NCBI GenBank assembly: GCA_965240325.2 | Contig: OZ251222.1 | Coordinates: 2,666,001 to 2,730,000, forward strand | Length of the DNA: 64,000 nucleotides | DNA from: Rebecca billardiae RCC1528 | Lineage: Eukaryota > Protista > Haptophyta | Reading direction: 5' to 3' | Shown here: piece after piece, positions 13,167 to 55,452 of the stretch | Layout of the letters: each line of letters opens with the position of its first letter | Numbering within the stretch: position 1 is the first letter of the stretch | Program-made: the position numbers and the translations under genes | Notes under the pieces: generated by a model | What the model saw: the letters and a program-made list of their open reading frames with translations, nothing else | Databases searched by the model: none | Told to the model about the DNA's origin: nothing

Positions 13167-13170
13167 TATA

Positions 13171-14189
<1,019 letters not shown>

Positions 14190-26465: not shown

Positions 26466-29400
26466 ATGCGGAAGATGAAGACGCTTGCCGCTGACGAGAG
26501 GACATCGAGGGCAACCTCGATCGTGCTGTGCCTGGCAGCAACAATGCTTGCGAGCGCGCCCTGTGCGCTGGGTGCGCCGTTTTCCACAAGCTCAAGCTTC
26601 ACCGATTGCCTGGCCAACACGACGTTGTGCACCGAGCTCGTGGCTCCGTCAAGCATGGTCAATGGCTCCATCCCCTCGGAGGTAGGGCTGATGACGAGGC
26701 TGACTAGGTTCGAGCTGCACGAGAACTCGCTCAGCGGCACGATGCCCACCGAGTTTGGCAAGCTCACCAGCCTCGAGCGCAGCACGCTCTACCGAAACTC
26801 GCTCGACGGCCAGATCCCGACCGAGCTTGGCGAGCAGGCGAGTCTCGTCGAGTTGCAGCTGTTTGAGAACTCGCTGAACGGCACGCTGCCCACGGAGATG
26901 GGCATGCTGACGACATTCACCAAGCTCGTGCTCGAGCTCAACTCGATCTCTGGCAGCTTGCCCACCGAGGTGGGGCAGATGGGCCGCTTTGCGCAAATGT
27001 GCGCGCACCGCGCGAGGGCGCGCCCTGCGCGCGCGCGCTGCCGACGCGAGCCCGTGCGCGCGCCGTGTGCTGCCGCTCATACGTGCGCGGCGGTACGCGT
27101 GCGCACGCCCTGTCCGCAGGCTGCTTCGCGAGAACCTGCTCGTCGGCAGTATCCCAACGGAGGTGGGTGGTCTGAGCAGCCTGGCGCTGATGCAGCTGTA
27201 CGACAACTCGCTCGACGGGAGCATCCCCACGCAAGTGAGCGGCATGACGAGCCTCACGGCGATGGCGCTGTACCGCAACTCGCTCGTCGGCGCGCTCCCG
27301 ACGGAGGTGGGCGAGATGACGAGCCTGATCGAGCTGGAGGGCTTCCGAAACTCGCTGAGCGGCCCCGTGCCGACGGAGGTCGGTGCTCTGACAGGCCTCA
27401 CCGACCTGCTCTTTGACCGCAACTCGTTTGACAGCCTGCCGACTGAGCTCGGCTTGCTCTCGAGCCTGAGGCTGATGGGCTTGGACCTGAACTCGCTGGC
27501 GAGCAGCATCCCGACCGAGCTTGGCGATATGAGCACGCTCGCGCTCATGTACCTGTACGACAACTCGCTCGTCGGCACGATCCCGACCGAGGTTGGCGAG
27601 CTGACGAGCCTCTCGTGGCTGCGGCTGTACCGCAACTCTCTGTCGGGCACGATTCCGACGGAGGTGGGCGCGCTGACGATCGGCAGTGCGCTGCTTCTGT
27701 TCGGCAACTCGCTCGACGGCAGTGTGCCCACGGAGCTCGGCGTGATGGTGAGCCTCACCTCCATCTCGCTGGACGACAACCCGATCGTGAGCGTCATTCC
27801 GACCGAGATTGGCGCGATGACGAGTCTCACGGCGATGAGCGTCGCCAACACGCTCATGTGTGGCGGCGAGCACAACTTCACGGTGGTGACGCCCGCAGTG
27901 CTGCCGGCGTGCCCGCCGTCACCTCCGCCGAGCCCGCCGAGCCCGCCGAGCCCGCCGCCGAGCCCGCCGCCAAGCCCGCCGACGCCGCCGCCGAGCCCGC
28001 CCGTGCGGTACTGGTACTCGGACTGCCTCGACAACACGACGTTGTGCACCGAGCTCGTGGCCCCTTCAAGCGGGCTCACGGGCCCCATCCCCTCGGAGGT
28101 GGGGCTGATGACGAGGCTGACCAGGTTCGAGCTGCACGACAACTCGCTGAGTGGCACGATGCCCACCGAGTTTGGCAAGCTCACCAGCCTCGAGCGCAGC
28201 ACGCTCTACCGCAACTCGCTCGACGGCCAGATCCCGACCGAGCTGGGCGAGCAGGCGAGTCTCGTCGAGTTGCAGCTGTTTCAGAACGCGCTGAACGGCA
28301 CGCTGCCCACGGAGATGGGCATGCTGACGACGTTCACCAAGCTCGTGCTCGAGCTCAACTCGATCTCTGGCAGCTTGCCCACCGAGGTGGGGCAGATGGG
28401 CCGCTTTGCGCAAATGTGCGCGCACGGCGCGAGGGCGCGCCTTGCGCGCGCGCGCTGCCGACGCGAGCCCGCGCGCGCGCCGTGTGCTGCCGCTCATACG
28501 TGCGCGGCGGTACGCGTGCGCACGCCTGGTCGGCAGGCTGCTTCGCGACAACCTGCTCGTCGGCAGTATCCCAACGGAGGTGGGTGGTCTGAGCAGCCTG
28601 GCGCTGATGCAGCTGAATGACAACTCGCTCGACGGGAGCATCCCCACGCAAGTGAGCGGCATGACGAGCCTCACGGCGATGGCGCTGTACCGCAACTCGC
28701 TCGTCGGCGCGCTCCCGACGGAGGTGGGCGAGATGACGAGCCTGATCGAGCTGGAGGGCTTCCGAAACTCGCTGAGCGGCCCCGTGCCGACGGAGGTCGG
28801 TGCTCTGACAGGCCTCACCAACCTGCTCTTTGACCGCAACTCGTTTGCCAGCCTGCCGACTGAGCTCGGCTTGCTCTCGAGCCTGAGGCTGATGGGCTTG
28901 GACCTGAACTCGCTGGCGAGCAGCATCCCGACCGAGCTTGGCGACATGAGCACGCTCGCGCTCATGTACCTGTACGACAACTCGCTCGTCGGCACGATCC
29001 CGACCGAGGTTGGCGAGCTGACGAGCCTCTCGTGGCTGCGGCTGTACCGCAACTCTCTGTCGGGCACGATTCCGACGGAGGTGGGCGCGCTGACGATCGG
29101 CAGTGCGCTGCTTCTGTTCGGCAACTCGCTCGACGGCAGTGTGCCCACGGAGCTCGGCGCGATGGTGAGCCTCACCTCCATCTCGCTGGACGACAACCCG
29201 ATCGTGAGCGTCATTCCGACCGAGATTGGCGCGATGACGAGTCTCACTGCGATGAGCGTCGCCGACACGCTCATGTGTGGCGGCGAGCACAACTTCACGG
29301 TGGTGACGCCCGCAGTGCTGCCGGCGTGCCCGCCGTCACCTCCGCCGAGCCCACCGAGCCCGCCGCCGAGCCCGCCGCCGAGCCTGCCGCCGACGCCGCC

Positions 29401-32400: not shown

Positions 32401-35400
32401 AGGCTGACCAGGTTCGAGCTGCACGACAACTCGCTGAGTGGCACGATGCCCACCGAGTTTGGCAAGCTCACCAGCCTCGAGCGCAGCACGCTCTACCGCA
32501 ACTCGCTCGACGGCCAGATCCCGACCGAGCTGGGCGAGCAGGCGAGTCTCGTCGAGTTGCAGCTGTTTCAGAACGCGCTGAACGGCACGCTGCCCACGGA
32601 GATGGGCATGCTGACGACGTTCACCAAGCTCGTGCTCGAGCTCAACTCGATCTCTGGCAGCTTGCCCACCGAGGTGGGGCAGATGGGCCGCTTTGCGCAA
32701 ATGTGCGCGCATGGCGCGAGGGCGCGCCCTGCGCGCGCGCGCTGCCGACGCGAGCCCGCGCGCGCGCCGTGTGCTGCCGCTCATACGTGCGCGGCGGTAC
32801 GCGTGCGCACGCCTGGTCGGCAGGCTGCTTCGCGACAACCTGCTCGTCGGCAGTATCCCAACGGAGGTGGGTGGTCTGAGCAGCCTGGCGCTGATGCAGC
32901 TGAATGACAACTCGCTCGACGGGAGCATCCCCACGCAAGTGAGCGGCATGACGAGCCTCACGGCGATGGCGCTGTACCGCAACTCGCTCGTCGGCGCGCT
33001 CCCGACGGAGGTGGGCGAGATGACGAGCCTGATCGAGCTGGAGGGCTTCCGAAACTCGCTGAGCGGCCCCGTGCCGACGGAGGTCGGTGCTCTGACAGGC
33101 CTCACCAACCTGCTCTTTGACCGCAACTCGTTTGCCAGCCTGCCGACTGAGCTCGGCTTGCTCTCGAGCCTGAGGCTGATGGGCTTGGACCTGAACTCGC
33201 TGGCGAGCAGCATCCCGACCGAGCTTGGCGACATGAGCACGCTCGCGCTCATGTACCTGTACGACAACTCGCTCGTCGGCACGATCCCGACCGAGGTTGG
33301 CGAGCTGACGAGCCTCTCGTGGCTGCGGCTGTACCGCAACTCTCTGTCGGGCACGATTCCGACGGAGGTGGGCGCGCTGACGATCGGCAGTGCGCTGCTT
33401 CTGTTCGGCAACTCGCTCGACGGCAGTGTGCCCACGGAGCTCGGCGCGATGGTGAGCCTCACCTCCATCTCGCTGGACGACAACCCGATCGTGAGCGTCA
33501 TTCCGACCGAGATCGGCGCGATGACGAGTCTCACGGCGATGAGCGTCGCCGACACGCTCATGTGTGGCGGCGAGCACAACTTCACGGTGGTGACGCCCGC
33601 AGTGCTGCCGGCGTGCCCGCCGTCACCTCCGCCGAGCCCGCCGAGCCCGCCGAGCCCGCCGCCGAGCCCGCCGCCAAGCCCGCCCACGCCGCCGCCGAGC
33701 CCGCCCGTGCGGTACTGGTACTCGGACTGCCTCGACAACACGACGTTGTGCACCGAGCTTGTGGCCCCTTCAAGCGGGCTCACGGGCCCCATCCCCTCGG
33801 AGGTGGGGCTGATGACGAGGCTGACCAGGTTCGAGCTGCACGACAACTCGCTGAGTGGCACGATGCCCACCGAGTTTGGCAAGCTCACCAGCCTCGAGCG
33901 CAGCACGCTCTACCGCAACTCGCTCGACGGCCAGATCCCGACCGAGCTGGGCGAGCAGGCGAGTCTCGTCGAGTTGCAGCTGTTTCAGAACGCGCTGAAC
34001 GGCACGCTGCCCACGGAGATGGGCATGCTGACGACGTTCACCAAGCTCGTGCTCGAGCTCAACTCGATCTCTGGCAGCTTGCCCACCGAGGTGGGGCAGA
34101 TGGGCCGCTTTGCGCAAATGTGCGCGCACGGCGCGAGGGCGCGCCCTGCGCGCGCGCGCTGCCGACGCGAGCCCGCGCGCGCGCCGTGTGCTGCCGCTCA
34201 TACGTGCGCGGCGGTACGCGTGCGCACGCCTGGTCGGCAGGCTGCTTCGCGACAACCTGCTCGTCGGCAGTATCCCAACGGAGGTGGGTGGTCTGAGCAG
34301 CCTGGCGCTGATGCAGCTGAACGACAACTCGCTCGACGGGAGCATCCCCACGCAAGTGAGCGGCATGACGAGCCTCACGGTGATGGCGCTGTACCGCAAC
34401 TCGCTCGTCGGCGCGCTCCCGACGGAGGTGGGCGAGATGACGAACCTGATCGAGCTGGAGGGCTTCCGAAACTCGCTGAGCGGCCCCGTGCCGACGGAGG
34501 TCGGTGCTCTGACAGGCCTCACCAACCTGCTCTTTGACCGCAACTCGTTTGACAGCCTGCCGACTGAGCTCGGCTTGCTCTCGAGCCTGAGGTTGATGGG
34601 CTTGGACCTGAACTCGCTGGCGAGCAGCATCCCGACCGAGCTTGGCGACATGAGCACGCTCGCGCTCATGTACCTGTACGACAACTCGCTCGTCGGCACG
34701 ATCCCGACCGAGGTTGGCGAGCTGACGAGCCTCTCGTGGCTGCGGCTGTACCGCAACTCTCTGTCGGGCACGATTCCGACGGAGGTGGGCGCGCTGACGA
34801 TCGGCAGTGCGCTGCTTCTGTTCGGCAACTCGCTCGACGGCAGTGTGCCCACGGAGCTCGGCGCGATGGCGAGCCTCACCTCCATCTCGCTGGACGACAA
34901 CCCGATCGTGAGTGTCATTCCGACCGAGATTGGCGCGATGACGAGTCTCACTGCGATGAGCGTCGCCGACACGCTCATGTGTGGCGGCGAGCACAACTTC
35001 ACGGTGGTGACGCCCGCAGTGCTGCCGGCGTGCCCGCCGTCACCTCCGCCGAGCCCGCCGAGCCCGCCGAGCCCGCCGCCGAGCCCGCCGCCGACGCCGC
35101 CACCGAGCCCGCCGCCGACGCCGCAGCCGAGCCCGCCGCCCGCGCCGCCACCCAACCCGCCCTCTCCGCCGCCCAGCGTGGTCCTGTCCGAAGTGAAGTT
35201 TGCGGACGGCACGAACGGCGTGGTCGTGCCCAGCGGCGCGTGGTGGGGCTGGGTCGCGGGCATCGGTGACTTGGATGGCGACGGCATCCCGGACGCGCTA
35301 TCCGGCGCGGTTCACGACGTGTTCGACAAGCAGGGCGCAGCGTACGTGCTGTTTCTCAACTCGGACGGGACTGTGCGGGCACAGCAGAAGATTGCGAACG

Positions 35401-38400
35401 GGATCGGCGGCTTCACCAACGCGCTGAGCAACCTCGATCAGTTCGGCTTTGGCGCGGACCGTCTCGGTGACCTCGACGGCGACAACGTGACTGAGCTGAT
35501 GGTGAACTCGCTGGACAGCGCGAACAAGGGCGCTCTCTTCGTGCTGTTCATGCATCGCAACGGCACCGTGCGCGAGTACCAGAAGCTCGCGCAGGGCGTG
35601 GGCGGCTTCACGTCGACGCTCGACGCGGGCGACTTGTTCGGGGAGAGCCTGTCGGGGCTCGGCGATCTGGACGGCGACGGCGTGCCGGACGTGATCGCGG
35701 GCGCGACGAGCGACGACACTGGCGTGAGCGGCGGCGGCGCGGTGTACGTGCTCCTGCTCAACGCGGATGGCACGGTCAAGGCGGAGCAGAAGATCGCCTC
35801 GGGCACGGGCGGGCTGAGCGCGAGCTTGGCTGCCGATGACTTCTTCGGGGGCGGCGTGGCGACATTGGGCGACGTTGATGGTGACGGCGTCGTCGACGTG
35901 CTGGTTGGCGCGCCCGGCGACGACACCGCCGCCACGAACGCAGGCGCCTTGTACGTGCTCTTCCTGCACGCGAATGGCACGGTGAAAGCGGAGCGAAAGC
36001 TCGTGCCTGACGGGAGCGACATGCCGCTCACGGCGAGCGCGTCGTGGGTGTTTGGAGTCGCGGTGGGCGGCGCGGGCGACCTGGACGGCGACGGCGTGCC
36101 TGATGCTCTGGTCGGCGCGACGGGCGTTGTCCGCACCGCCGGCAAGACTGGCGCCGCGTTTGTGGTCTACCTGAACGCTGACGGCAGCGCCAAGCACGTG
36201 GACGAGATCAGCGCGGACGCGGGCGGCTTCACTGGGCCGCTCGCGCACGACGACGAGTTCGGCAGGAAGGTGGCCCTGCTCGGCGACCTGGACGGGGGCG
36301 GCAATCCGTCGATCATCGTGGGCGCGCCCAAGGATGCCCACGGCGCGGCGTGGGTGCTCAAGCTGTCGGGGTACTACCCGCCGAGCCCGCCCTCGCCGCC
36401 GCCGAGCCCGCCACCGTCGCCGCCGCCGAGCCCGCCGCCCGCGCCGACGGTGCGCGCGCAGCCCGAGTACCAGGCATGCGAGGCCGACCCGAGCACGTGC
36501 ACGGCGCTCGGCGTGGCAAACCGCGGTCTCACTGGCACGCTGCCGACCGAGCTCGGCCTCTTCAGCGTGCTCACTGTTATCCACGCCCACCTCAACAGCC
36601 TCACTGGCCCGTGGCCCACAGAGATCGGCGGTCTCACGAGCTTGCAGTCCTTCTGGTTGTACAACAACTGGGTGATCGGCGCGCCGCTGCCGACAGAGAT
36701 CGGCCTCATGACCAGCCTCACCGAAGTGCGCGTCTGGCAGGCTGGGCTGAATGGCTCGCTGCCCACTGAGTTCGGCAACCTGCCGCAGTTGGGAGAGCTC
36801 TCGGCCGGCGGAAACTCGTTCACGGGCACGATCCCGACTGAGATTGGGCAGCTGACCGCTGCGGACGTGCTTCTCGTCTTCGACGCCAATTCGTTCACGG
36901 GCTCCGTGCCCACAGAGGTGGGCGGGCTCACGGCCCTCGACCGGTTTGGCTGGAACCGGAACAGGCTCAACGGCACGGTGCCGACGGAGGTGGGCACGAT
37001 GCGCGCGCTCAGTTGGCTCCATTTGCACACCAACTCGATCACGGGCCAGATGCCCACCGAGCTCGGCAACATGACAGTCCTCACGACCCTACAGCTGCAT
37101 ATCAACTCGCTGACGGGGCCGATCCCGACCGAGCTCGGCCTCGCAGCCAGCATGGTCTATCTCGAGCTCTACTCGAACTCGTTTGAGGCGTCACTGCCGA
37201 GGGAGCTGGGCCAGCTGGCGAGCCTCGAAAACATGGTCATTTCTGGCGGGCAACTGACCGGCACGCTGCCCTCCGAGTTTGGTGACCTGGCAGCGCTCAA
37301 GAACATGGACCTTGCCGAAAACGCGCTGGCGGCCACGCTGCCGACGGAGCTGGGCCGGCTGGCCAGCCTGATCAAGCTTGATACCGCGATCAACGCGTTC
37401 ACGGGCCCGCTGCCGACGGAGCTCGGCGCGCTGAACGCGCTCGAGACAATCCAGCTCTTCCTCAACAGTCTGAACGGCACGCTGCCGATGACACTGGGCA
37501 GTCTCACGCGCATGTTGGATTTCCAGCTCGGAGTCAACTCGTTGCGCGGCACGCTGCCGTCGGAGATTGGGCTGCTCACCGCGACGTGGCGCCTGGAGTT
37601 CAACACGAACTCGCTGAGCGGCACGCTGCCGACGACGCTCGGCCAGCTCGCCGCGCTCGCGCGTTTCAGCATCGCCACGAACCCGGACGTCCTGGGCACG
37701 CTGCCCTCCGAGATCGGCGCGCTCGGCGCGCTCACCGCCTTTGACGTGACGTCGACGGGTGTGTGCGGCGACACGGCTGCGACTGGGCTGAACGGCACAG
37801 GCGTGATCATCCCGGACCCGCTCGCCGCGTGCGCGTCGCCATCGCCTCCACCGAGTCCACCGAGCCCGCTGCTCCAGGCGAACCCGCCACCGAGCCTGCC
37901 GAAGCCGCCGCCAAGCCCGCCGCCGCCGAGCCCGCCGCCGAGCCCGCCGCCGAGCCCGCCGAGCCCGCCCGTGCGGTACTGGTACTCGGACTGCCTCGAC
38001 AACACGACGTTGTGCACCGAGCTCGTGGCCCCTTCAAGCGGGCTCACGGGCCCCATCCCCTCGGAGGTGGGGCTGATGACGAGGCTGACCAGGTTCGAGC
38101 TGCACGACAACTCGCTAAGTGGCACGATGCCCACCGAGTTTGGCAAGCTCACCAGCCTCGAGCGCAGCACGCTCTACCGCAACTCGCTCGACGGCCAGAT
38201 CCCGACCGAGCTTGGCGAGCAGGCGAGTCTCGTCGAGTTGCAGCTGTTTCAGAACTCGCTGAACGGCACGCTGCCCACGGAGATGGGCATGCTGACGACT
38301 TTCACCAAGCTCGTGCTCGAGCGCAACTCGATCTCTGGCAGCTTGCCCACCGAGGTGGGGCGTATGGGCCGCTTTGAGCAAATGTGCGCGCACCGCGCGA

Positions 38401-41400
38401 GGGCGCCCTCTGCGCGCGCGCTGCCGACGCGAGACCGCGCGCGCGCCGTGGGCTGCCGCTCATACGTGCGCGGCGGTACGTGTGCGCGCGCTCTGTCCGC
38501 AGGCTGCTTCGCGACAACCTGCTCGTCGGCAGTATCCCAACGGAGGTGGGTGGTCTGAGCAGCCTGGCGCTGATGCAGCTGTACGACAACTCGCTCGACG
38601 GGAGCATCCCCACGCAAGTGAGCGGCATGACGAGCCTCACTGTGATGGCGCTGTACCGCAACTCGCTCGTCGGCGCGCTCCCGACGGAGGTGGGCGAGAT
38701 GACGAGCCTGACCGAGCTGGAGGGCTTCCGAAACTCGCTGAGCGGCCCCGTGCCGACGGAGGTCGGTGCTCTGACAGGCCTCACCGACCTGCTCTTTGAC
38801 CGCAACTCGTTTGACAGCCTGCCGACTGAGCTCGGCTTGCTCTCGAGCCTGAGGCTGATGGGCTTGGACCTGAACTCGCTGGCGAGCAGCATCCCGACCG
38901 AGCTTGGCGACATGAGCACGCTCGCGCTCATGTACCTGTACGACAACTCGCTCGTCGGCACGATCCCGACCGAGGTTGGCGAGCTGACGAGCCTCTCGTG
39001 GCTGCGGCTGTACCGCAACTCTCTGTCGGGCACGATTCCGACGGAGGTGGGCGCGCTGACGATCGGCAGTGCGCTGCTTCTGTTCGGCAACTCGCTCGAC
39101 GGCAGTGTGCCCACGGAGCTCGGCGCGATGGTGAGCCTCACCTCCATCTCGCTGGACGACAACCCGATCGTGAGCGTCATTCCGACCGAGATTGGCGCGA
39201 TGACGAGTCTCACGGCGATGAGCGTCGCCGACACGCTCATGTGTGGCGGCGAGCACAACTTCACGGTGGTGACGCCCGCAGTGCTGCCGGCGTGCCCGCC
39301 GTCACCTCCGCCGAGCCCGCCGAGCCCGCCGAGCCCGCCGAGCCCGCCGCCGAGCCCGCCGCCGCCGAGCCCGCCGCCGAGCCCGCCACCGTCGCCACCG
39401 CCGAGCCCGCCGAGCCCGCTGCTTCAGGGGAACCCGCCACCGAGCCTACCGAAGCCGCCGCCAAGCCCGCCGCCGCCGAGCCCGCCGCCAAGCCCGCCGC
39501 CGACGCCGCCGAGCCCGCCGGTGCGGTACTGGTACTCGGACTGCCTCGACAACACGACGTTGTGCACCGAGCTCGTGGCCCCTTCAAGCGGGCTCACGGG
39601 CCCCATCCCCTCGGAGGTGGGGCTGATGACGAGGCTGACCAGGTTCGAGCTGCACGACAACTCGCTGAGTGGCACGATGCCCACCGAGTTTGGCAAGCTC
39701 ACCAGCCTCGAGCGCAGCACGCTCTACCGCAACTCGCTCGACGGCCAGATCCCGACCGAGCTGGGCGAGCAGGCGAGTCTCGTCGAGTTGCAGCTGTTTC
39801 AGAACTCGCTGAACGGCACGCTGCCCACGGAGATGGGCATGCTGACGACGTTCACCAAGCTCGTGCTCGAGCTCAACTCGATCTCTGGCAGCTTGCCCAC
39901 CGAGGTGGGGCAGATGGGCCGCTTTGCGCAAATGTGCGCGCACCGCGCGAGGGCGCCCTCTGCGCGCGCGCTGCCGACGCGAGACCGCGCGCGCGCCGTG
40001 TGCTGCCGCTCATACGTGCGCGGCGGTACGTGTGCGCGCGCCCTGTCCGCAGGCTGCTTCGCGACAACCTGCTCGTCGGCAGTATCCCAACGGAGGTGGG
40101 TGGTCTGAGCAGCCTGGCGCTGATGCAGCTGAACGACAACTCGCTCGACGGGAGCATCCCCACGCAAGTGAGCGGCATGACGAGCCTCACGGCGATGGCG
40201 CTGTACCGCAACTCGCTCGTCGGCGCGCTCCCGACGGAGGTGGGCGAGATGACGAGCCTGACCGAGCTGGAGGGCTTCCGCAACTCGCTGAGCGGCCCCG
40301 TGCCGACGGAGGTCGGTGCTCTGACAGGCCTCACCAACCTGCTCTTTGACCGCAACTCGTTTGACAGCCTGCCGACTGAGCTCGGCTTGCTCTCGAGCCT
40401 GAGGCTGATGGGCTTGGACCTGAACTCGCTGGCGAGCAGCATCCCGACCGAGCTTGGCGACATGAGCACGCTCGCGCTCATGTACCTGTACGACAACTCG
40501 CTCGTCGGCACGATCCCGACCGAGGTTGGCGAGCTGACGAGCCTCTCGTGGCTGCGGCTGTACCGCAACTCTCTGTCGGGCACGATTCCGACGGAGGTGG
40601 GCGCGCTGACGATCGGCAGTGCGCTGCTTCTGTTCGGCAACTCGCTCGACGGCAGTGTGCCCACGGAGCTCGGTGCGATGGCGAGCCTCACCTCCATCTC
40701 GCTGGACGACAACCCGATCGTGAGCGTCATTCCGACCGAGATTGGCGCGATGACGAGTCTCACGGCGATGAGCGTCGCCGACACGCTCATGTGTGGCGGC
40801 GAGCACAACTTCACGGTGGTGACGCCCGCAGTGCTGCCGGCGTGCCCGCCGTCACCTCCGCCGAGCCCGCCGAGCCCGCCGAGCCCGCCCCCGAGCCCGC
40901 CGCCAAGCCCGCCGACGCCGAGCCCGCCGCCGAGCCCGCCACCGTCGCCACCGCCGAGCCCGCCGAGCCCGCTGCTTCAGGGGAACCCGCCACCGAGCCT
41001 ACCGAAGCCGCCGCCAAGCCCGCCGCCGCCGAGCCCGCCGCCGAGCCCGCCGCCGAGCCCGCCGAGCCCGCCCGTGCGGTACTGGTACTCGGACTGCCTC
41101 GACAACACGACGTTGTGCACCGAGCTCGTGGCCCCTTCAAGCGGGCTCACGGGCCCCATCCCCTCGGAGGTGGGGCTGATGACGAGGCTGACCAGGTTCG
41201 AGCTGCACGACAACTCGCTGAGTGGCACGATGCCCACCGAGTTTGGCAAGCTCACCAGCCTCGAGCGCAGCACGCTCTACCGCAACTCGCTCGACGGCCA
41301 GATCCCGACCGAGCTGGGCGAGCAGGCGAGTCTCGTCGAGTTGCAGCTGTTTCAGAACTCGCTGAACGGCACGCTGCCCACGGAGATGGGCATGCTGACG

Positions 41401-44400
41401 ACGTTCACCAAGCTCGTGCTCGAGCTCAACTCGATCTCTGGCAGCTTGCCCACCGAGGTGGGGCGTATGGGCCGCTTTGAGCAAATGTGCGCGCACCGCG
41501 CGAGGGCGCCCTCTGCGCGCGCGCTGCCGACGCGAGACCGCGCGCGCGCCGTGTGCTGCCGCTCATACGTGCGCGGCGGTACGTGTGCGCGCGCCCTGTC
41601 CGCAGGCTGCTTCGCGACAACCTGCTCGTCGGCAGTATCCCAACGGAGGTGGGTGGTCTGAGCAGCCTGGCGCTGATGCAGCTGAACGACAACTCGCTCG
41701 ACGGGAGCATCCCCACGCAAGTGAGCGGCATGACGAGCCTCACGGCGATGGCGCTGTACCGCAACTCGCTCGTCGGCGCGCTCCCGACGGAGGTGGGCGA
41801 GATGACGAGCCTGACCGAGCTGGAGGGCTTCCGCAACTCGCTGAGCGGCCCCGTGCCGACGGAGGTCGGTGCTCTGACAGGCCTCACCAACCTGCTCTTT
41901 GACCGCAACTCGTTTGACAGCCTGCCGACTGAGCTCGGCTTGCTCTCGAGCCTGAGGCTGATGGGCTTGGACCTGAACTCGCTGGCGAGCAGCATCCCGA
42001 CCGAGCTTGGCGACATGAGCACGCTCGCGCTCATGTACCTGTACGACAACTCGCTCGTCGGCACGATCCCGACCGAGGTTGGCGAGCTGACGAGCCTCTC
42101 GTGGCTGCGGCTGTACCGCAACTCTCTGTCGGGCACGATTCCGACGGAGGTGGGCGCGCTGACGATCGGCAGTGCGCTGCTTCTGTTCGGCAACTCGCTC
42201 GACGGCAGTGTGCCCACGGAGCTCGGCGCGATGGTGAGCCTCACCTCCATCTCGCTGGACGACAACCCGATCGTGAGCGTCATTCCGACCGAGATTGGCG
42301 CGATGACGAGTCTCACGGCAATGAGCGTCGCCGACACGCTCATGTGTGGCGGCGAGCACAACTTCACGGTGGTGACGCCCGCAGTGCTGCCGGCGTGCCC
42401 GCCGTCACCTCCGCCGAGCCCGCCGAGCCCGCCGAGCCCGCCGCCGAGCCCACCTCCCAGCCAGCCTCCGTTTCCACCTCCATCCCCGCCGCCGTTGTCA
42501 CCCCGCGTGCCACCTCCGAGCCCACCGCCCAGCCCGCCACCGCCGACGCCCCCGCCCAGCCCGCCGCCGAGTCCGCCGCCCAGCCCACCACCGTCACCTT
42601 TGCCTCCGCCAAGCCCACCACCCAGCCAGCCTCCGATGCCGCCGCCATCGCCACCACCATCGAAGCCACCCGCGCCACCTCCAAGCCCGCCGCCGAGCCC
42701 GCCACCGCCGGTGCCACCGCCCATCCCACCGCCATCACCGCCGCCGAGTCCGCCACCTGTGCCACCGCCATCGCCACCGCCAAGCCCGCCACCGTCACCT
42801 TTGCCGCCGCCGAGTCCACCACCCAACCAGCCTCCGTTGCCGCCGCCATCCCCGCCGCCGTCGTTGCCACCTGCGCCACCTCCAAGCCCGCCACCGAGCC
42901 CGCCACCTCCGAGCCCGCCACCGAGCCCGCCGCCATCGCCGCCGCCGAGTCCGCCACCTGTGCCACCGCCATCGCCACCGCCGAGCCCGCCACCGTCACC
43001 TTTGCCGCCGCCAAGCCCACCTCCCAGCCAGCCTCCGTCGCCGCCACCGTCCCCGCCGCCGTCGTCGCCACCCGCGCCGCCTCCAAGCCCGCCGCCGAGC
43101 CCGCCACCGCCGATGCCACCGCCCATCCCGCCGCCATCGCCGCCGCCGAGTCCGCCACCTGTGCCACCGCCATCCCCACCTCCGAGCCCGCCACCGTCAC
43201 CTTTGCCGCCGCCAAGCCCACCTCCCAGCCAGCCTCCGTCGCCGCCACCGTCCCCGCCGCCGTCGTCGCCACCCGCGCCGCCTCCAAGCCCGCCGCCGAG
43301 CCCGCCACCGCCGATGCCACCGCCCATCCCGCCGCCATCGCCGCCGCCGAGCCCGCCACCTGTGCCACCGCCATCGCCACCGCCGAGCCCACCACCATCA
43401 CCTTTGCCGCCGCCGAGTCCACCACCCAACCAGCCTCCGTTGCCGCCACCGTCGCCGCCGCCGTCGTCGCCACCCACGCCGCCACCAAGCCCGCCGCCGA
43501 GCCCGCCACCGCCGATGCCACCGCCCATCCCGCCGCCATCGCCGCCGCCGAGTCCGCCACCTGTGCTACCGCCATCGCCACCGCCGAGCCCGCCACCGTC
43601 ACCTTTGCCGCCTCCAAGCCCACCACCCAACCAGCCTCCGTTGCCGCCGCCGTCGCCGCCGCCGTCGTCGCCACCCGCGCCACCTCCAAGCCCGCCGCCA
43701 AGCCCGCCACCTCCCAGCCCGCCACCGAGCCCGCCGCCGTCACCGCCGCCGAGACCGCCTCCTGTCCCACCGCCATCGCCACCGCCGAGCCCGCCACCGT
43801 CACCTTTGCCTCCGCCGAGCCCACCTCCCAGCCAGCCTCCGTCGCCGCCGCCATCCCCGCCGCCGACATCGCCACCCGCGCCACCTCCAAGCCCGCCGCC
43901 GAGCCCGCCACCACCGATGCCCCCACCGAGTCCGCCACCGAGCCCGCCTCCAAGCCCCCCGCCCGCTCCGCCGCCTTCCCCACCGCCGAGCCCACCGCCG
44001 TCACCTTTGCCACCGCCGAGTCCACCTCCCAACCAGCCTCCGTTGCCGCCACCGTCGCCGCCGCCGTCGTCGCCACCCACGCCGCCTCCAAGCCCGCCAC
44101 CCAGTCCGCCACCTCCCAGCCCGCCACCGAGCCCGCCGCCATCGCCGCCGCCGAGTCCGCCACCTGTGCCGCCGCCATCGCCACCGCCGAGCCCGCCACC
44201 GTCACCTTTGCCTCCGCCGAGCCCACCTCCCAGCCAGCCTCCATCGCCGCCACCGTCCCCGCCGCCGTCGTCGCCACCCGCGCCGCCTCCAAGCCCGCCG
44301 CCGAGCCCGCCACCGCCGATGCCACCGCCCATCCCGCCGCCATCGCCGCCGCCGAGCCCGCCACCTGTGCCACCGCCATCGCCACCGCCGAGCCCACCAC

Positions 44401-47400
44401 CATCACCTTTGCCGCCGCCGAGTCCACCACCCAACCAGCCTCCGTTGCCGCCACCGTCGCCGCCGCCGTCGTCGCCACCCACGCCGCCACCAAGCCCGCC
44501 GCCGAGCCCGCCACCGCCGATGCCACCGCCCATCCCGCCGCCATCGCCGCCGCCGAGTCCGCCACCTGTGCTACCGCCATCGCCACCGCCGAGCCCGCCA
44601 CCGTCTCCTTTGCCGCCTCCAAGCCCACCACCCAACCAGCCTCCGTTGCCGCCGCCGTCGCCGCCGCCGTCGTCGCCACCCGCGCCACCTCCAAGCCCGC
44701 CGCCAAGCCCGCCACCTCCCAGCCCGCCACCGAGCCCGCCGCCGTCACCGCCGCCGAGACCGCCTCCTGTCCCACCGCCATCGCCACCGCCGAGCCCGCC
44801 ACCGTCACCTTTGCCTCCGCCAAGCCCACCTCCCAGCCAGCCTCCGTCGCCGCCGCCATCCCCGCCGCCGACATCGCCACCCGCGCCACCTCCAAGCCCG
44901 CCGCCGAGCCCGCCACCACCGATGCCCCCACCGAGTCCGCCACCGAGCCCGCCTCCAAGCCCCCCGCCCGCTCCGCCGCCTTCGCCACCGCCGAGCCCAC
45001 CGCCGTCACCTTTGCCACCGCCGAGTCCACCTCCCAACCAGCCTCCGTTGCCGCCACCGTCCCCGCCGCCGTCGTCGCCACCCGCGCCGCCTCCAAGCCC
45101 GCCACCCAGTCCGCCACCTCCAAGCCCGCCACCGAGCCCGCCGCCATCGCCGCCGCCGAGTCCGCCACCTGTGCCGCCGCCATCGCCACCGCCGAGCCCG
45201 CCACCGTCACCTTTGCCTCCGCCGAGCCCACCTCCCAGCCAGCCTCCGTCGCCGCCGCCATCCCCGCCGCCGTCGTCGCCACCCGCGCCGCCTCCAAGCC
45301 CGCCGCCGAGCCCGCCACCTCCGAGCCCGCCACCGAGCCCACCGCCATCGCCGCCGCCGGGTCCGCCACCTGTGCCACCGCCATCCCCACCGCCGAGCCC
45401 GCCACCGTCACCTTTGCCTCCGCCGAGCCCACCTCCCAGCCAGCCTCCGTCGCCGCCGCCATCCCCGCCGCCGACATCGCCACCCGCGCCACCTCCAAGC
45501 CCGCCGCCGAGCCCGCCACCACCGATGCCCCCACCGAGTCCGCCACCGAGCCCGCCTCCAAGCCCCCCGCCCGCTCCGCCGCCTTCGCCACCGCCGAGCC
45601 CACCGCCGTCACCTTTGCCACCGCCGAGTCCACCTCCCAACCAGCCTCCGTTGCCGCCACCGTCCCCGCCGCCGTCGTCGCCACCCGCGCCGCCTCCAAG
45701 CCCGCCGCCCAGTCCGCCACCTCCCAGCCCGCCACCGAGCCCGCCGCCATCGCCACCGCCGAGTCCGCCACCTGTGCCGCCGCCATCGCCACCGCCCAGC
45801 CCACCACCGTCACCTTTGCCGCCGCCGAGTCCACCACCCAACCAGCCTCCGTCGCCGCCACCGTCCCCGCCGCCGTCGTCGCCACCCGCGCCGCCTCCAA
45901 GCCCGCCTCCGAGCCCGCCACCTCCGAGCGCGCCACCGAGCCCGCCGCCATCGCCGCCGCCGAGTCCGCCACCTGTGCCGCCGCCATCGCCACCGCCGAG
46001 CCCACCACCGTCACCTTTGCCGCCGCCGAGTCCACCACCCAACCAGCCTCCGTCGCCGCCACCGTCCCCGCCGCCGTCGTCGCCACCCGCGCCGCCTCCA
46101 AGCCCGCCTCCGAGCCCGCCACCTCCGAGCGCGCCACCGAGCCCGCCGCCATCGCCGCCGCCGAGTCCGCCACCTGTGCCGCCGCCATCGCCACCGCCGA
46201 GCCCACCACCGTCACCTTTGCCCCCGCCGAGCCCACCTCCCAGCCAGCCTCCGTCGCCGCCACCGTCCCCGCCGCCGTCGTCGCCACCCACGCCGCCACC
46301 AAGCCCGCCGCCGAGCCCGCCACCTCCGAGCCCGCCACCGAGCCCGCCGCCATCGCCGCCGCCGAGTCCGCCACCTGTGCCGCCGCCATCGCCACCGCCC
46401 AGCCCGCCACCGTCACCTTTGCCTCCGCCGAGCCCACCTCCCAGCCAGCCTCCGTCGCCGCCACCGTCCCCGCCGCCGTCGTCGCCACCCGCGCCGCCTC
46501 CAAGCCCGCCGCCGAGCCCGCCACCACCGATGCCCCCACCGAGTCCGCCACCGAGCCCGCCTCCAAGCCCCCCTCCCGCTCCGCCGCCTTCGCCACCGCC
46601 GAGCCCACCGCCGTCACCTTTGCCACCGCCGAGTCCACCTCCCAACCAGCCTCCGTTGCCGCCACCGTCCCCGCCGCCGTCGTCGCCACCCGCGCCGCCT
46701 CCAAGCCCGCCGCCGAGCCCGCCACCACCGATGCCCCCACCGAGCCCGCCGCCATCGCCGCCGCCGAGTCCGCCACCTGTGCCGCCGCCATCGCCACCGC
46801 CGAGCCCACCACCATCACCTTTGCCTCCGCCGAGCCCACCTCCCAGCCAGCCTCCGTCGCCGCCACCGTCCCCGCCGCCGTCGTCGCCACCCGCGCCACC
46901 TCCAAGCCCGCCGCCGAGCCCGCCACCTCCCAGCCCGCCACCGAGCCCGCCGCCATCGCCACCGCCGAGTCCGCCACCTGTGCCACCGCCATCGCCACCG
47001 CCGAGCCCACCACCGTCACCTTTGCCCCCGCCGAGCCCACCTCCCAGCCAGCCTCCGTCGCCGCCACCGTCCCCGCCGCCGTCGTCGCCACCCGCGCCGC
47101 CTCCAAGCCCGCCGCCGAGCCCGCCACCTCCGAGCCCGCCACCGAGCCCGCCGCCATCGCCGCCGCCGAGTCCGCCACCTGTGCCGCCGCCATCGCCACC
47201 GCCATCGCCACCACCGTCACCTTTGCCGCCGCCGAGTCCACCACCCAACCAGCCTCCGTCGCCGCCGCCGTCGCCGCCGCCATCACCGCCACCCGCGCCA
47301 CCTCCCAGCCCGCCGCCGAGCCCGCCACCTCCGAGCCCGCCACCGAGCCCGCCGCCATTGCCGCCGCCGGGTCCGCCTCCTGTCCCACCGCCATCGCCAC

Positions 47401-50400
47401 CGCCCAGCCCGCCACCGTCACCTTTGCCTCCGCCGAGCCCACCTCCCAGCCAGCCTCCGTCGCCGCCGCCATCCCCGCCGCCGACATCGCCACCCGCGCC
47501 GCCTCCAAGCCCGCCGCCGAGCCCGCCACCGCCCATGCTACCACCGAGTCCGCCACCGAGTCCGCCTCCAAGCCCCCCGCCCGCTCTGCCGCCGTCGCCA
47601 CCACCGAGCCCGCCACCGACACCTTTGCCGCCGCCGAGTCCACCTCCGAGCCAGCCTCCGTTGCCGCCGCCATCCCCGCCGCCGTCCCCACCACCCGCGC
47701 CGCCTCCAAGCCCGCCGCCCAGCCCGCCACCTCCGACAGCCCCGCCGAGTCCACCGCCAAGCCCGCCGCCGCTTTCGCCGCCTGGTCCGCCACCGTCGCC
47801 CCCACCAAGCCCACCGCCGTCACCTTTGCCTCCGCCGAGCCCACCTCCCAGCCAGCCTCCGTCGCCGCCGCCATCCCCGCCGCCATCGTTGCCACCCGCG
47901 CCCCCTCCAAGCCCGCCGCCCAGCCCGCCACCGCCCGTGCCACCACCGAGCCCGCCGCCAAACTTGCCGCCGCGCATGCCGCCTGTTCCGCCGCCGTCGC
48001 CTCCACCGAGCCCACCGCCGTCACCTTTGCCTCCGCCGAGCCCACCTCCTAGCCAGCCTCCGTCGCCGCCGCCGTCCCCGCCGCCATCGTCGCCACCCGT
48101 GCCGCCTCCAAGCCCGCCGCCCAGCCCGCCACCGCCAATGCCACCACCAAGCCCGCCGCCGATGCCGCCAACCCCTGTTCCGCCTCCAAGCCCGCCACCG
48201 GTGCCACCGCCGAGCTTGCCCCCGACTCTGCCGCCGTCGCCACCACCGAGCCCACCGCCGTCACCTTTGCCTCCGCCGAGCCCACCTCCCAGCCAGCCTC
48301 CGTCGCCGCCGCCGTCCCCGCCGCCGTCGTTGCCACCCGCGCCACCTCCAAGCCCGCCGCCGAGTCTCCCACCGCCAACGCTCCCGCCACGCCCGCCGCC
48401 AAGCCCCCCACCGCCCCCGCCGCCTGTTCCGCCGCCGTCGCCACCGCCGAGCCTACCACCGTCACCGTCGCCTCCGCCGAGCCCACCTCCCAGCCAGCCT
48501 CCGTCGCCGCCGCCGTCGCCGCCGCCGTCGTCGCCGCCCGCGCCGCCTCCAAGCCCGCCGCCCAGCCCGCCACCGCCCGCATTGCCGCCTGCCCCGCTGC
48601 CACCACCCCGCATCTCACCCTTGCCACCGCCACAGCCATCACTGCCACCGCACCGCCCGCCGCCCCCCCCTTCGGCACCGCCCGTACCACCACCGACACC
48701 ACCCCCGTTGGCGCCGCCGCCGCCCCCTCCGCCGCCGCTCCCTGTCCTCGGCTGCACGAACTCGGCTGCGCTCAACTTCAACGCGATCGCCACAGACGAC
48801 GATGGCAGCTGCATCCTCGAGACCAGGGGCTGCACTCTTTCGCTCGCGCCCAACTTCGACTCCCGCGCCGACGCAGACGACGGGAGCTGCGCCAAGTTCA
48901 CGGCTGGGTGCACGGATCGCACCGCGGCCAACTTTTACAGGCTCGCCGACGTCGATGACGGCAGCTGCTTCTTCTACGCCTACGGCTGCAACGAGCGCGG
49001 CGCGTGCAACTACGACGCCACGGCGACCGCGAGCGATGGCTCGTGCGAGTACTCGTGCTACGGCTGCACCGACGCGAGCGCTAGCAACTACGCCTCCGAG
49101 GCGACGGTCGACGACGGCGGGTGCGAGTTCATCTTCCGGGGCTGCACGAGCACCCTGGCCAACAACTACGATTCGACGGCCACTGTGATCTCTGGGTGCG
49201 TGTTCCCGCGGCCGGGCTGCCGCGACAGCCGCGCGTCCAACTTCGACTCCCTGGCGGACGCGGACGGCATCGCGTGCACCATCGAGGGCTGCGTGCTGCC
49301 CTCGGCGCTCAACTTCGACAGCGAGGCGACCAAGGACGACGGGACGTGCGTGCTGCCCGTGCGCGGCTGCACCGACCCGGCCGCACTCAACTTCCGCTCG
49401 GACGCAACCGTCGACTCTGGCCGCTGCGTGCTCCCCGTGCTCGGGTGCACGCTGACGAACGCGCTGAACTACGACCCCGCGGCCAATGCGGACGACGGCT
49501 CGTGCGAGCTGCCGGTTGTCGGCTGCACCGACCCCGAGGCGGCCAATTACCGCCGGCTCGCCACCGTCGACGCTGTGCCCAGCGTGTGCACGTACACCGG
49601 CTGCACAGACCCGTCGGCTCGCAACTTCGACGCGCGCGCAAGCATCGATGATCGGACTTGTCTCCGGCACATCGACGGGTGCACCGACCCGCTGGCCGCC
49701 AACTACGCGCGTGCCGCGACGCGGGACAGCGGCTTGTGCGTGTACGCGGGCTGCACCGATCCGCGAGCGACCAACTACGACGAGTCCACGACCATCGACG
49801 ACGGCTCGTGCAAGTTCGCCATCGCTGCCGGCACAGCGCGTGTACTCGTGCCTCTCGGCGGCTGCGAGATCAGCACGGTGAGCACCGAGGGCACGGCCTT
49901 GGACGCGGCGATGACGCGCCGCACCGGCGCGTTCCAGCTGTACTACACGAGCGCGGCCGCGCACGTGCTCCTCACGCCGGGCGGGTTCTGCCAGGACACG
50001 TACGGCGCTTCGTATGGCGTGTACCTCAGCTCGCCCGTGGACGCAGCCGAGCTCACGCCGCTGACGACGCTGTACGTCGCGCTGCTCGCGGGCGGCGTGC
50101 GCGTGGACGACGCGATCACGCGCGTCGCCACCTGCCTCGGGCTCGACGCGTCCCTCGACCTCCGCTTCTACTCGACGCTCGCGTACTTCTACGGCGACGT
50201 GCGCGCCCGGCCCGTCCTCGCGGCGCATCTCGTCGTCGTCGAGCTGCTGCGAGGCACGTACGCGCTCTATGGCAGCTCGTCTCGGGACGCGACCCAGCTC
50301 GACATTGAGACTGCAGCGGTCCTTGGCGTGCTCGACGCGTGTGAGGCAAGCAGCGGCGTGCAGGTGGACTTCTCAGACGCCGACACCGTCGAGGCAGTGC

Positions 50401-52871
50401 TCACCGCAGCCGGTGACACAGCCGGCGTGAGCGCGACTGACGCCGAGCGCGCCGCTGCCGCCGTCCGGATCGGTGTCGCCGTGGCGAACATCAACGCCGT
50501 GTGGAGTGGGACGCGCACGCGCCCGCGCCGCGCACTGCAAGAGTCGAACGGCACCGACGCCGACGAAGGCCTGGTCGTGGACACGTCGCACTTTGAGGCA
50601 TCGTACGAGGGCCTCAACGTGAGCGTGAGCGTGGGCTGTCTCGAAGCCGCTGCCGACAACTACGACTCGACCGCGACGGTGGACTCTGCGAACTGCACGG
50701 TGCGGGGGTGCACGGATGCGAACGCGACCAACTTTGAGGCCATCGCAACACACGACGACGGCAGCTGCGCCGCGGCCACCAAAGGGTGCACCGATGCATC
50801 CGCGACCAACTTTGCGTCCAACGCGACTGCCGACGATAGCAGCTGCGAGTACGCTGTCCTCGGCTGCACGGCACCCAACGCGTCTAACTTCGAGCTCGAG
50901 GCAACCATCGACGACGGCAGCTGCACCCCACGCGTGTATGGCTGTCTCGACACCGCGGCGCTCAACTTCGCCTCAAACGCGACCGACGCGGCGGAGGACG
51001 CCTGCGTGCTGCCTGTGGAGGGATGCCGTGAGAGCGCTGCCTACAACTACGCGCCGAACGCGACTGTTGACGGAGACGCGTGTGTGTACGCGGGCTGCAC
51101 CGACTCGACGGCGAGCAACTACGACGGCACTGCGACTGTCCCCGACGCGACCCAGTGCGCCTTTGCAATCTCGGGCTGCACCGACTCGGCCGCGAGCGGA
51201 TACGACTCACGCGCGACGCTTGACGACGGCTCGTGTGTCTACCTCGGCTGCACTGACACTGCCGCGCTCAACTTTGATGCAACTGCCACGTTCGACGATG
51301 GCACGTGCGCATTCCCGATCGTCGGCTGCACGCAGTCGCTCGCGCTCAACTTTGACGCGCTCGCCACCGCGGAGGGCCAAGGCGACCTGGCGTGTCTTTT
51401 CGCCGGGTGCACGGACTCAAGCGCGCTCAACTTTGACAGCTCGGCGAACGCCAACGACGGCTCGTGCGTGATCACTGTGCGCGGCTGTACGCGCACCGAT
51501 GCAATCAACTTCAACTCGCGCGCGACTGTGGGCGAGCCCGCCGACTGCGCCTTCCTTGGCTGCACAGACCCCATCGCCCTCGACTACGACTCGAACGCAA
51601 CTGTCAACTCTGGTGAGTGCGACTATGGCGTACCCGGCTGCGTCGACCCGTCGGCGTACAACTACGACGCGAACGCGACTGTGGACAACGGCGCATGCGA
51701 GTACGCTGGCTGCGTGAACACGCTGGCGCTCAACTACGACTCGACTGCGACGATCATGCGCGCAGGAGCGTGCACGTACCCGATAGGCGGGTGCACGCTC
51801 ACCTTCGCGGCGAATTTCAACCCGACCGCGACTGCCGACGATGGCTCGTGTGTCGTGCGCGGCTGCACGGACTCAGCCGCGACAAACTATTGGTCCCTCG
51901 CCAATGCGGACGACGGTGGCTGCACATTTGCCCCTCCGCCAGCCCCGCCACCGAGCCCGCCGCCTTCGCCCCCGCCGCCGTCAAGCCCGCCACTGCAACC
52001 TCCGCCGCCACCTTCGCCTCCACCTCCTGCGAGCCCACCCCCGACACCGCCCTCGCAGCCACCACCAGCAAGCCCGCCCTCACCCCCGCCGCTGCCCGAG
52101 GACTCCGTGCTGCTGGACGTCACCCTGGACATGGAGGTGGACGCGTTCAACGACACGGCGGTCCAGGCGAGCTACGTGCGTGGCCTCGCCGACGGGCTCG
52201 GCGTGCCCACCTCGCACGTCACCATCGAATCGTTCGCCGCTGGGTCGGTCGTCGTGCGCACGCAGGTCCTGGTGCCGCCGTCATCAGGCTCGTCTGCCGA
52301 CGTCCGCGATGTGCTCGGCGCTGTCAACGCGTCGACGATAGGCAGCTGGCTGGCCGTGTACGACAGCTCGCTGCGCGTCTCGGTGGACCCAGTGCTCATC
52401 CTCTCCCCTGGCAACGCCCCATCACCAGAGGACGATGGTGGCGATGGCAGCAAGGACGACTCGAGCGGCAGCCGTGGTGGACGTGGCAGCCGCAGTGATG
52501 GAGGTACGCCCACATTCAGGACGAGGGGGGGTGCTGTGCAGCTCACGCAAACCGAGCTCGAGCTTGCGATCGCGCTTCCAATTGTTGGGGTCCTGCTGAT
52601 CGCGGTTGCGTCCTACGCCGTCTACCGCCACATGTCCCGCAAGCGAGCTGTGCGGGTGACTCCAGAGGGGCTTGAGAGCAACTCGGATGGCGCTGCGTAC
52701 GCTACATCGGGCACTCCTGGACGCGCTGGCCGGCCTCCTCCGCCAGATGAGGTCACCCCATCGCCACTGCAAGCACAGCGCGCGCGTACAGCTCCGGTCG
52801 ATTCGGGCGAACGATCGGACATCCGGATGACAGATGACGACGATGACGAGGAGGCGGCCGAGTCCCGCTGA
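26466..52871 (+). CDS. Giant (~8,440 aa) type-I membrane adhesin/extensin-like protein: LRR modules, FG-GAP propeller, Ser-Pro rod, Cys-rich repeats, SEA-like domain, TM; 10 exons
   Basis: ATG at 26466 followed by a signal-like segment. Removing nine introns (1083 nt) from 26406 nt leaves 25323 nt = 8441 codons in one frame ending TGA at 52871. Each splice restores an exact 24-aa LRR (PTEVGQMGRFAQM|LLRDNLLVGSI). Repeat number depends on correct assembly. Confidence 0.85.
26999..27119 (+). other. Intron 1 of giant gene (121 nt)
   Basis: AT|GTGCGC...CCGCAG|G; restores the frame. Confidence 0.9.
28416..28536 (+). other. Intron 2 of giant gene (121 nt)
   Basis: GTGCGC...CGGCAG at the same position in the repeat unit. 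Confidence 0.9.
29851..29971 (+). other. Intron 3 of giant gene (121 nt)
   Basis: GTGCGC...CGGCAG. Confidence 0.9.
31268..31388 (+). other. Intron 4 of giant gene (121 nt)
   Basis: GTGCGC...CGGCAG. Confidence 0.9.
32703..32823 (+). other. Intron 5 of giant gene (121 nt)
   Basis: GTGCGC...CGGCAG. Confidence 0.9.
34120..34240 (+). other. Intron 6 of giant gene (121 nt)
   Basis: GTGCGC...CGGCAG. Confidence 0.9.
35178..36370 (+). other. FG-GAP/integrin-alpha-type beta-propeller domain within the giant protein
   Basis: Six GDxDGxG/N loops (GDLDGDGIPD, GDLDGDNVTE, GDLDGDGVPD, GDVDGDGVVD, GDLDGDGVPD, GDLDGGGNPS) with FG, VGAP and GAVYVL motifs. Confidence 0.9.
38384..38502 (+). other. Intron 7 of giant gene (119 nt)
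   Basis: GTGCGC...CCGCAG; the frame change matches a length of 119 nt. Confidence 0.9.
39934..40052 (+). other. Intron 8 of giant gene (119 nt)
   Basis: GTGCGC...CCGCAG. Confidence 0.9.
41487..41605 (+). other. Intron 9 of giant gene (119 nt)
   Basis: GTGCGC...CCGCAG. Confidence 0.9.
42399..48743 (+). repeat. Coding minisatellite: ~30 x 201 bp (67-aa Ser-Pro3 unit), ~2115 aa
   Basis: TCACCTTTG recurs at 42594, 42795, 42996 and onward (period 201). Unit reads SPLPPPSPPP(S/N)QPP... Confidence 0.95.
48750..51923 (+). repeat. 31 Cys-rich repeats GCxDxxAxN(Y/F)xxxAxxDDGSC in two blocks (14 at 48750-49811, 17 at 50634-51923)
   Basis: Counted in the translation of ORF 41487..52871. Confidence 0.9.
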
Positions 52872-53720
52872 CTGCGCTGTCCGTGAGGCCTGCGTGTGAT
52901 GTGCTACTGCAGCCTGCACCTGCCCCTGCGGCGCGCTGCCCGTGGCCGTGCGGCTGGCAGCTGCCGCGGCGGGTCTGCGCGGGCCCCGTCTGATAGGATG
53001 ACAATGACATATTGATGATATGTGACTGTGAGCTAGAATCCGATGACTGAGGTGACGACTAGCTTAGTAGTCATGCTCGCGACGCCCGACTAGCATCACG
53101 TCAGCCGCAGCCTGATGGAGGTACGCCCACATTCAGGACGAGGGGGAGTGCTGTGCAGCTCACGCAAACCGAGCTCGAGCTTGCGATCGCGCTTCCAATT
53201 GTTGGGGTCCTGCTGATCGCGGTTGCGTCCTACGCCGTCTACCGCCACATGTCCCGCAAGCGAGCTGTGCGGGTGACTCCAGAGGGGCTTGAGAGCAACT
53301 CGGGTGGCGCTGCGTACGCTACATCGGGCACTCCTGGACGCGCTGGCCGGCCTCCTCCGCCAGATGAGGTCACCCCATCGCCACTGCAAGCACAGCGCGC
53401 GCGTACAGCTCCGGTCGATTCGGGCGAACGATCGGACATCCGGATGACAGATGACGACGATGACGAGGAGGCGGCCGAGTCCCGCTGACTGCGCTGTCCG
53501 TGAGGCCTGCGTGTGATGTGCTACTGCAGCCTGCACCTGCCCCTGCGGCGCGCTGCCCGTGGCCGTGCGGCTGGCAGCTGCCGCGGCGGGTCTGCGCGGG
53601 CCCCGTCTGATAGGATGACAATGACATATTGATGATATGTGACTGTGAGCTAGAATCCGATGACTGAGGTGACGACTAGCTTAGTAGTCATGCTCGCGAC
53701 GCCCTACTAGCATCACGTCA
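52487..53720 (+). repeat. Tandem duplication (2 x ~617 bp) of the giant gene's TM, tail and 3'UTR
   Basis: TGATGGAGGTACG at 52496 and 53113; TAGCATCACGTCA at 53091 and 53708; about three substitutions between copies. Confidence 0.93.
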
Positions 53721-55406: not shown

Positions 55407-55452
55407 TTCACGCGCCACGCCGCTGTACCGACGTCGTCGTCGTCGGTGCGTC

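Follow-up and report, generated by a model that had tools for sequence, protein, structure and literature searches.

Does the stretch between 26466 and 52871 of this window, the 64,000 nt of Rebecca billardiae DNA analysed here, hold one very large gene, and if so, what would its product do at the cell surface? The first-pass annotation had proposed that splicing of nine introns joins the whole interval into a single frame, and this is borne out: their removal leaves exactly 8,440 codons with a single terminal stop at 52869-52871, with 275 and 72 stops in the other two frames of the spliced sequence. All nine introns have GT...AG ends and interrupt the same Met codon, being copies of one intron that was multiplied together with the LRR module. 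Splicing restores the 24-aa LRR register, and retention of an intron leads to a stop codon within 58-139 codons. Hydropathy over the protein finds a signal peptide, a single transmembrane (TM) helix and nothing else, as expected of the single gene with type I topology suggested earlier. The module order, the 14 and 17 Cys repeats, the rod of some 2,100 aa, the TM helix and the tail in that description were likewise all recovered. The parts, in window coordinates and all on the forward strand (+), are as follows.

26466..52871 (+): the entire gene with its 10 exons, encoding 8,440 aa (about 861 kDa before modification)
26466..26573 (+): signal peptide with a basic n-region and a hydrophobic core at aa 19-37, cleavage probably near aa 36
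26604..35033 (+): LRR modules M1-M6, each of 396 aa with about 16 plant-type 24-aa LRRs, Cys caps and one intron
26999-27119, 28416-28536, 29851-29971, 31268-31388, 32703-32823, 34120-34240 (+): six introns of 121 nt
35175..36368 (+): beta-propeller of FG-GAP repeats with six clear blades (loops of DxDxDG type) and a partial one
36462..37835 (+): single-copy LRR module, intronless, 17-18 repeats
37989..42398 (+): LRR modules M7-M9, with Ser-Pro linkers of 81-82 aa
38384-38502, 39934-40052, 41487-41605 (+): three introns of 119 nt
42399..48740 (+): Ser-Pro rod, 2,114 aa, a 67-aa (201-bp) unit repeated about 28 times
48750..49820 (+): first Cys-repeat array, 14 repeats of about 26 aa (GCT-x3-A-x-N-F/Y-x3-A...DDGSC)
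49821..50516 (+): middle domain, unnamed, with homologues (DGY...TPLT) in giant surface proteins of bacteria
50511..50540 (+): basic motif TRTRPRRALQ, a candidate for cutting after aa 7663 by site-1 protease (RxxL) or a furin-type enzyme
50634..51926 (+): second Cys-repeat array, 17 repeats
51927..52097 (+): short Ser-Pro linker
52104..52409 (+): SEA-like domain by sequence pattern, with an exact GSVVV at 52242-52256 and candidate self-cleavage between G8232 and S8233
52563..52625 (+): single transmembrane helix
52626..52871 (+): cytosolic tail of 81 aa, basic at its start and acidic at its end, no Pfam domain
53102..53720 (+): tandem copy (99%) of 52487-53103, that is, of the last 617 nt with TM helix, tail, stop and 3' flank

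The nine copies of the LRR module provide a measure of selection on this frame. They are 97-99.6% identical and differ pairwise by 5-40 nt with no identical pair, each carrying private differences in a mosaic pattern. Variation among them is 3.6 times higher in the intron than in the exons (p=1e-4), the sole indel sits in the intron, and the ratio of nonsynonymous to synonymous changes is 0.38 (p=8e-4). Since the nine copies all differ and are under purifying selection, the coding frame is real. The longest exact repeat within the gene is 784 nt, and the linkers between LRR modules alternate in a higher-order pattern. Judged from its sequence, the locus is a selected coding gene enlarged by recent internal duplication and no simple assembly echo. 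Database searches were run exon by exon; the joined protein served only for counts and a single profile comparison, both done locally. Four C-terminal products and the first ORF, looked up as exact sequences, had no match, and a homologue search with the entire base likewise found none, the C-terminal region having no copy in the protein collections searched. The top representative match, P0001, was left out as a repeat artefact.

Several features of the surroundings may be recorded here. The tandem copy at the 3' end carries 3 substitutions and a 2-nt insertion and has no start codon ahead of the TM helix; it may be a dead duplicate, an alternative last exon or an assembly artefact. At 26113-26138, some 330 nt before the start codon, a 7-bp direct repeat flanks a 12-bp palindrome (GTTACGA-CAAGGG-CCCTTG-GTTACGA), which fits a transposon excision footprint. 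Two long inverted-repeat pairs (377 nt at 99.5% and 400 nt at 97%) at 55482-57627 resemble a foldback element, an exact 163-bp tandem duplication lies at 19093-19419, and a TATC/CT microsatellite block at 13167-13642 holds the only 100-N gap of the window (13370-13469). The GC content of the window is 70.6%; that of Diacronema lutheri is 73.25% (PMC8379373). An intronless gene of the tubulin-tyrosine ligase family occupies 20515-22584 and is matched at 99.9% by a 2,240-nt contig in run ERR14847148 that covers little beyond the ORF and its flanks. Other neighbours encode a galactose sulfotransferase and an ARM-BTB protein; together with the spliceosomal introns, these genes mark the window as eukaryotic. 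Four further long open frames, at 6583-11796 (-), 22972-25446 (-), 53904-55949 (-) and 57902-60562 (+), have no Pfam match at E 0.001, and some of them may be shadow frames of GC-rich genes.

The N-terminal part of the protein carries 11 heads, namely the nine near-identical LRR modules, one distinct LRR module and one FG-GAP propeller. All ten LRR modules are of the plant extracellular type, as had been recognised earlier. The module of about 17 LRRs described as unique is indeed present once, and its closest solved relatives are the ectodomains of the plant receptors MIK2, GSO1 and FLS2 (E below 1e-100). Modules M1-M6 are joined by Ser-Pro linkers of 36-42 aa. A Tyr-Trp-Tyr follows each Ser-Pro linker before M2-M9 (for example at 28003-28020); it is similar to the Tyr-X-Tyr motif through which extensins are cross-linked, but may merely belong to the LRR cap. 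Matches of the LRR modules to the NCBIfam effector families XopAE and XopAC were confined to the LRRs and far below cut-off, and an effector identity was rejected.

The label "integrin-like" stands only in part. There is an FG-GAP propeller (PF01839, E 9e-22); however, it is 45-52% identical to bacterial FG-GAP proteins across its full 400 aa (E about 1e-96), with relatives in Acidimicrobiales, Planctomycetota and others, whereas its integrin matches are weak and partial (best E 3.6e-9). Neither integrin leg domains (thigh/calf, by Pfam) nor a GFFKR after the TM helix was found, the tail beginning with RHMSRKR. The propeller is thus best described as a bacterial-type FG-GAP, and we name no donor.

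Twelve of the 25 amino-acid changes among the nine LRR copies fall on the concave face (p=0.003). The substitution rate of this binding face, 0.064, compares with 0.075 at synonymous positions and 0.019 in the constrained framework, so that changes of the face are about neutral, and a diversifying, immune-like LRR array is ruled out. The near-neutral rate of the face and the small differences between copies would fit nine heads that engage the same ligand by avidity.

Behind the heads lies the rod, which consists of 70.7% Pro and 18.7% Ser (89% Pro+Ser), contains no Tyr and has Ser-Pro3 and Ser-Pro4 in numbers of 257 and 30. Its units show a five-unit higher-order duplication, and two unit pairs are identical. 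With 2,114 aa of such composition it is, at the level of sequence, a long Ser-Pro shaft of the kind seen in algal HRGPs of the agglutinin and MST3 type. Long Ser-Pro tracts of Chlamydomonas are hydroxylated and glycosylated polyproline II rods (PMC11015965); by analogy, we infer hydroxylation and glycosylation of the present rod. At 3.1 A per residue (PMC11015965), it would span about 655 nm if it forms a polyproline II helix.

The base of the protein, between rod and membrane, includes modules shared with bacteria and other algae. No Pfam family covers its 31 Cys repeats, although relatives of this GCTD repeat abound (4,376 matches, best E 1e-104). Many of these have PF18962, and many are T9SS cargo proteins of Flavobacteriales, which carry the same uncatalogued repeat; others are found in haptophytes, and the nearest Atlas clusters are mostly from Haptophyta.

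The domain of some 270 aa between the two arrays had been called unique, and this cannot be maintained: it has homologues, likewise unnamed, in giant surface proteins of bacteria. Against a profile made from bacterial rows only, it scores 94 bits, as against 0.3 bits for the reversed sequence; the rows of this profile were chosen by the present query, and the same profile finds algal copies at 35-49 bits. An alignment-based model with pLDDT 86, which replaced a poor single-sequence fold (pLDDT 49), predicts a small beta-sandwich with a helical bundle. Its structure matches in the Atlas are bacterial cadherin/Ig-type surface proteins (TM about 0.8), and a fold match was also obtained to the Aureococcus anophagefferens virus protein A0A076FGU7 (E 1.7e-6).

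Among solved structures, the best match is the non-heme ("secretion") domain of Geobacter PgcA (PDB 9i0d/9i0e), over the whole domain, with Z 7.9, rmsd 3.7, 151 aligned residues, 17% identity and a Foldseek E of 3.4e-3; the next match has Z 4.9. This PgcA domain ranked first in three structure searches (Z 6.3-7.9), where a Z below 8 is moderate and not conclusive. Profile searches of PDB sequences gave no PgcA row, and the PDB copy searched may not contain the entry. PgcA is a lipid-anchored protein with Pro-Thr-tethered heme domains, and a truncated form is set free when the chain is cut within the matching domain or where that domain ends (PMC10570954, PMC11520253), in one study at its C-terminal end (PMC11520253). 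PgcA and the present protein both have the domain between the membrane anchor and functional units tethered by Pro-rich segments, near a processing site that is a candidate one in the present protein; however, the anchor of PgcA is on the opposite side, and PgcA carries hemes whereas the present protein does not.

The D-x-N-G-N-G loop, which most relatives of the middle domain keep, is lost in this copy. In a tree, the domain sits on a long branch with support of 70/83, and neither a single nor a bacterial origin is supported; no donor is claimed. A syntaxin match to the middle-domain profile (E 9e-4) fell to 0.27 with a wider alignment and is a helical match. Scans of viral, phage and plasmid sequences were blank. 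A stand-alone, N-terminally anchored copy of the domain (P0004, at L001 1643-2407) was seen on a virus-like contig that is densely packed with genes, an OTU gene among them.

Two likely processing sites in this base had been overlooked. The first, RRAL (aa 7660-7663), lies past the last helix of the middle domain, in the low-confidence tail of the model. RPRR/RRAL is the sole R-x-[RK]-R or R-x-x-R-[AL]-L site in the 8,440 aa and stands exactly at the domain end. The consensus of site-1 protease is RxxL/RxLx, and plant S1P (SBT6.1) cuts an ERRRAL site (PMC13082318). RRAL agrees with that consensus in what would be an exposed lumenal linker, which makes it a candidate site. The order of Cys array, middle domain and RR-x-L type motif recurs in the algal-type metagenome proteins P0022, P0035 (locus L003) and L005; in L003 and L005, a Pro-Ser stalk precedes it and a Cys array follows. 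The stand-alone middle-domain copy on L001 stops exactly where RR-x-L would begin. An RR-x-L motif is present in 11 of the 15 algal-type Cys-repeat matches, against 2.2 expected by shuffling, for a pattern that was written after the matches were seen. Bacterial-type Cys arrays, in contrast, seldom have it: of 105 matches in the AT-rich class, 7 do, and some of these 7 are themselves algal. In Prymnesium parvum, Cys arrays are split directly by RR-x-L motifs with no middle domain. Just past RRAL, the present copy lacks the extra Cys seen in P0035 and L005, which counts against retention of the large piece after a cut there.

Two of these relatives deserve a description of their own. The Prymnesium parvum gene AB1Y20_012991 (L002 9980-15481) is annotated with 554 aa; within its uninterrupted ORF of 1,833 codons lie a long tract of Ser-Pro, two heads of the F5/8 type and two Cys arrays split by RR-x-L. 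The metagenome ORF L005 (1-7480) encodes at least 2,493 aa. A Pro-Ser stalk and Cys arrays are combined there with a CAP domain, the middle domain and the basic site, followed by FG-GAP, one TM helix and, on the cytosolic side, EF hands, so that the toolkit is shared and only its order differs.

The second candidate site is GSVVV, which occurs once in the whole protein (aa 8232-8236), in the membrane-proximal domain. MUC1 cleaves itself at GSVVV (PMC9564314), and the halves of a cleaved SEA domain stay associated until force separates them (PMC10556640). The description of this domain as SEA-like rests on the exact GSVVV and the sequence pattern, but comparison with Pfam SEA and with SEA domains of the PDB gave no match at E 10. 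Since there are two likely cutting points at the base, the whole structure is probably sheddable by the cell.

Taken together, we consider it somewhat probable that the gene encodes a processed, force-sheddable, multivalent surface filament that resembles a transmembrane mucin and is assembled from algal and bacterial-type parts. The earlier idea of a multivalent tethered filament fits the 11 heads, the rod, the one TM helix and the lack of an enzyme inside; the kinase domain reported absent is indeed missing. In such a filament, the rod, as a polyproline II helix with attached sugars, would keep the heads at a distance of about 0.65 micrometres, or near 1 micrometre with the head string included, and the nine near-identical heads would bind one repeated ligand by avidity, on a surface, a bacterium, a virus or another cell. 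The precursor would be cut between RRAL and Q in the secretory pathway by a site-1-type subtilase and would cleave itself between G and SVVV; the products, of about 778, 57 and 21 kDa, would be held together without a peptide bond. A pull on bound heads would then release the filament, so that the cell is freed or the bound matter discarded, and signalling, if any, would come only from the short leftover stub.

Of the other explanations, the best placed, though rather unlikely, is that the gene encodes the precursor of a secreted matrix protein, in which the cut at RRAL would free the 778-kDa head-rod piece to enter a cell coat or mucilage and the anchor would serve trafficking only. No obvious link spans RRAL in this copy, the ORF of the Prymnesium relative with its heads, rods and split Cys arrays ends without a TM helix, and truncated PgcA is released (PMC11520253). 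However, the Prymnesium gene may have more exons, and a second Cys array, an SEA-like domain with an intact motif and a tail of 81 aa exceed the needs of a disposable anchor. We find it quite unlikely that the protein is instead an uncut structural glycocalyx component, or a scale or hair tether, acting as a permanent spacer in which the basic and GSVVV motifs go unused. Many SEA domains do not self-cleave and RR-x-L motifs are common among algal secreted proteins; yet each of the two motifs is an exact match, occurs once in the protein and sits at a domain junction, and the position of the basic one is kept in distant relatives. Chlamydomonas MST3, whose long poly-Pro scaffold is held by a membrane domain (PMC11015965), would nevertheless be a precedent for such a spacer. 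Least probable is a real gene whose repeats were inflated or misordered by assembly, or a recently expanded and little-expressed copy, for despite the near-identity of the modules, the identical pairs of rod units and the duplicated 3' end, each module has its own mosaic of differences, exact repeats do not exceed 784 nt, the linkers alternate and selection is purifying.

The base of the sheddable filament that we favour joins the GCTD repeat to the DGY...TPLT domain, two modules that are widespread and unnamed, and holds two exact candidate cut sites. An unlikely extension is that the succession of Cys array, PgcA-like domain, RR-x-L and Cys array is an undescribed "cut-and-clasp" release device common to haptophytes. 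If so, its parts would also be used by bacteria and by giant viruses of algae, and GAIN and SEA would be joined by a third module for ectodomain release, one that can be exchanged beneath a shared set of heads and stalks; a function would thereby be found for the unnamed bacterial domain and for the GCTD repeat, which is very common. That annotation misses or shortens such genes is illustrated by the 554 aa listed over the 1,833-codon ORF of Prymnesium.

A literature search found no published description of this layout. The plant LRR-extensins (LRX/PEX) share with it a signal peptide and plant-type extracellular LRRs followed by Ser-Pro tracts; they differ in having one LRR module where there are ten here, and the present protein favours Ser-Pro3 over Ser-Pro4, has a rod devoid of Tyr and is TM-anchored, so that neither the Ser-Pro4 and Tyr cross-link extensin nor the TM-less secretion of LRX is seen. 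As in the agglutinins of Chlamydomonas, a head points outward on a long Pro-rich shaft (PMC2113723), and as in the mastigoneme protein MST3, a giant poly-Pro chain has a membrane anchor (PMC11015965); unlike in these, the heads are LRR and FG-GAP, there is one TM helix and there is no PKD-like domain. Pfam and hydropathy found no PKD-like multi-pass domain, REJ, GAIN/GPS or 5-TM base in this protein. Mucins of the MUC1 type share the signal peptide, a long tandem-repeat rod, a membrane-proximal GSVVV, one TM helix and a short tail (PMC9564314, PMC10556640). The likeness lies in the layout and is not backed by a sequence match; the rod here is of the Ser-Pro3 (HRGP) type and carries 11 folded heads, and beneath it stand Cys arrays together with a domain of bacterial type that brings a second candidate site, of the protease type. 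Each part has precedent, and on the evidence of its domains the protein is not an LRX, a receptor kinase, an integrin or an MST3. If it is expressed as modelled, a naked or thinly scaled alga would make a near-micrometre, multi-headed, sheddable coat with one gene and, using LRRs of plant type, rods of HRGP type and modules of bacterial type, would have reached the MUC1 design.
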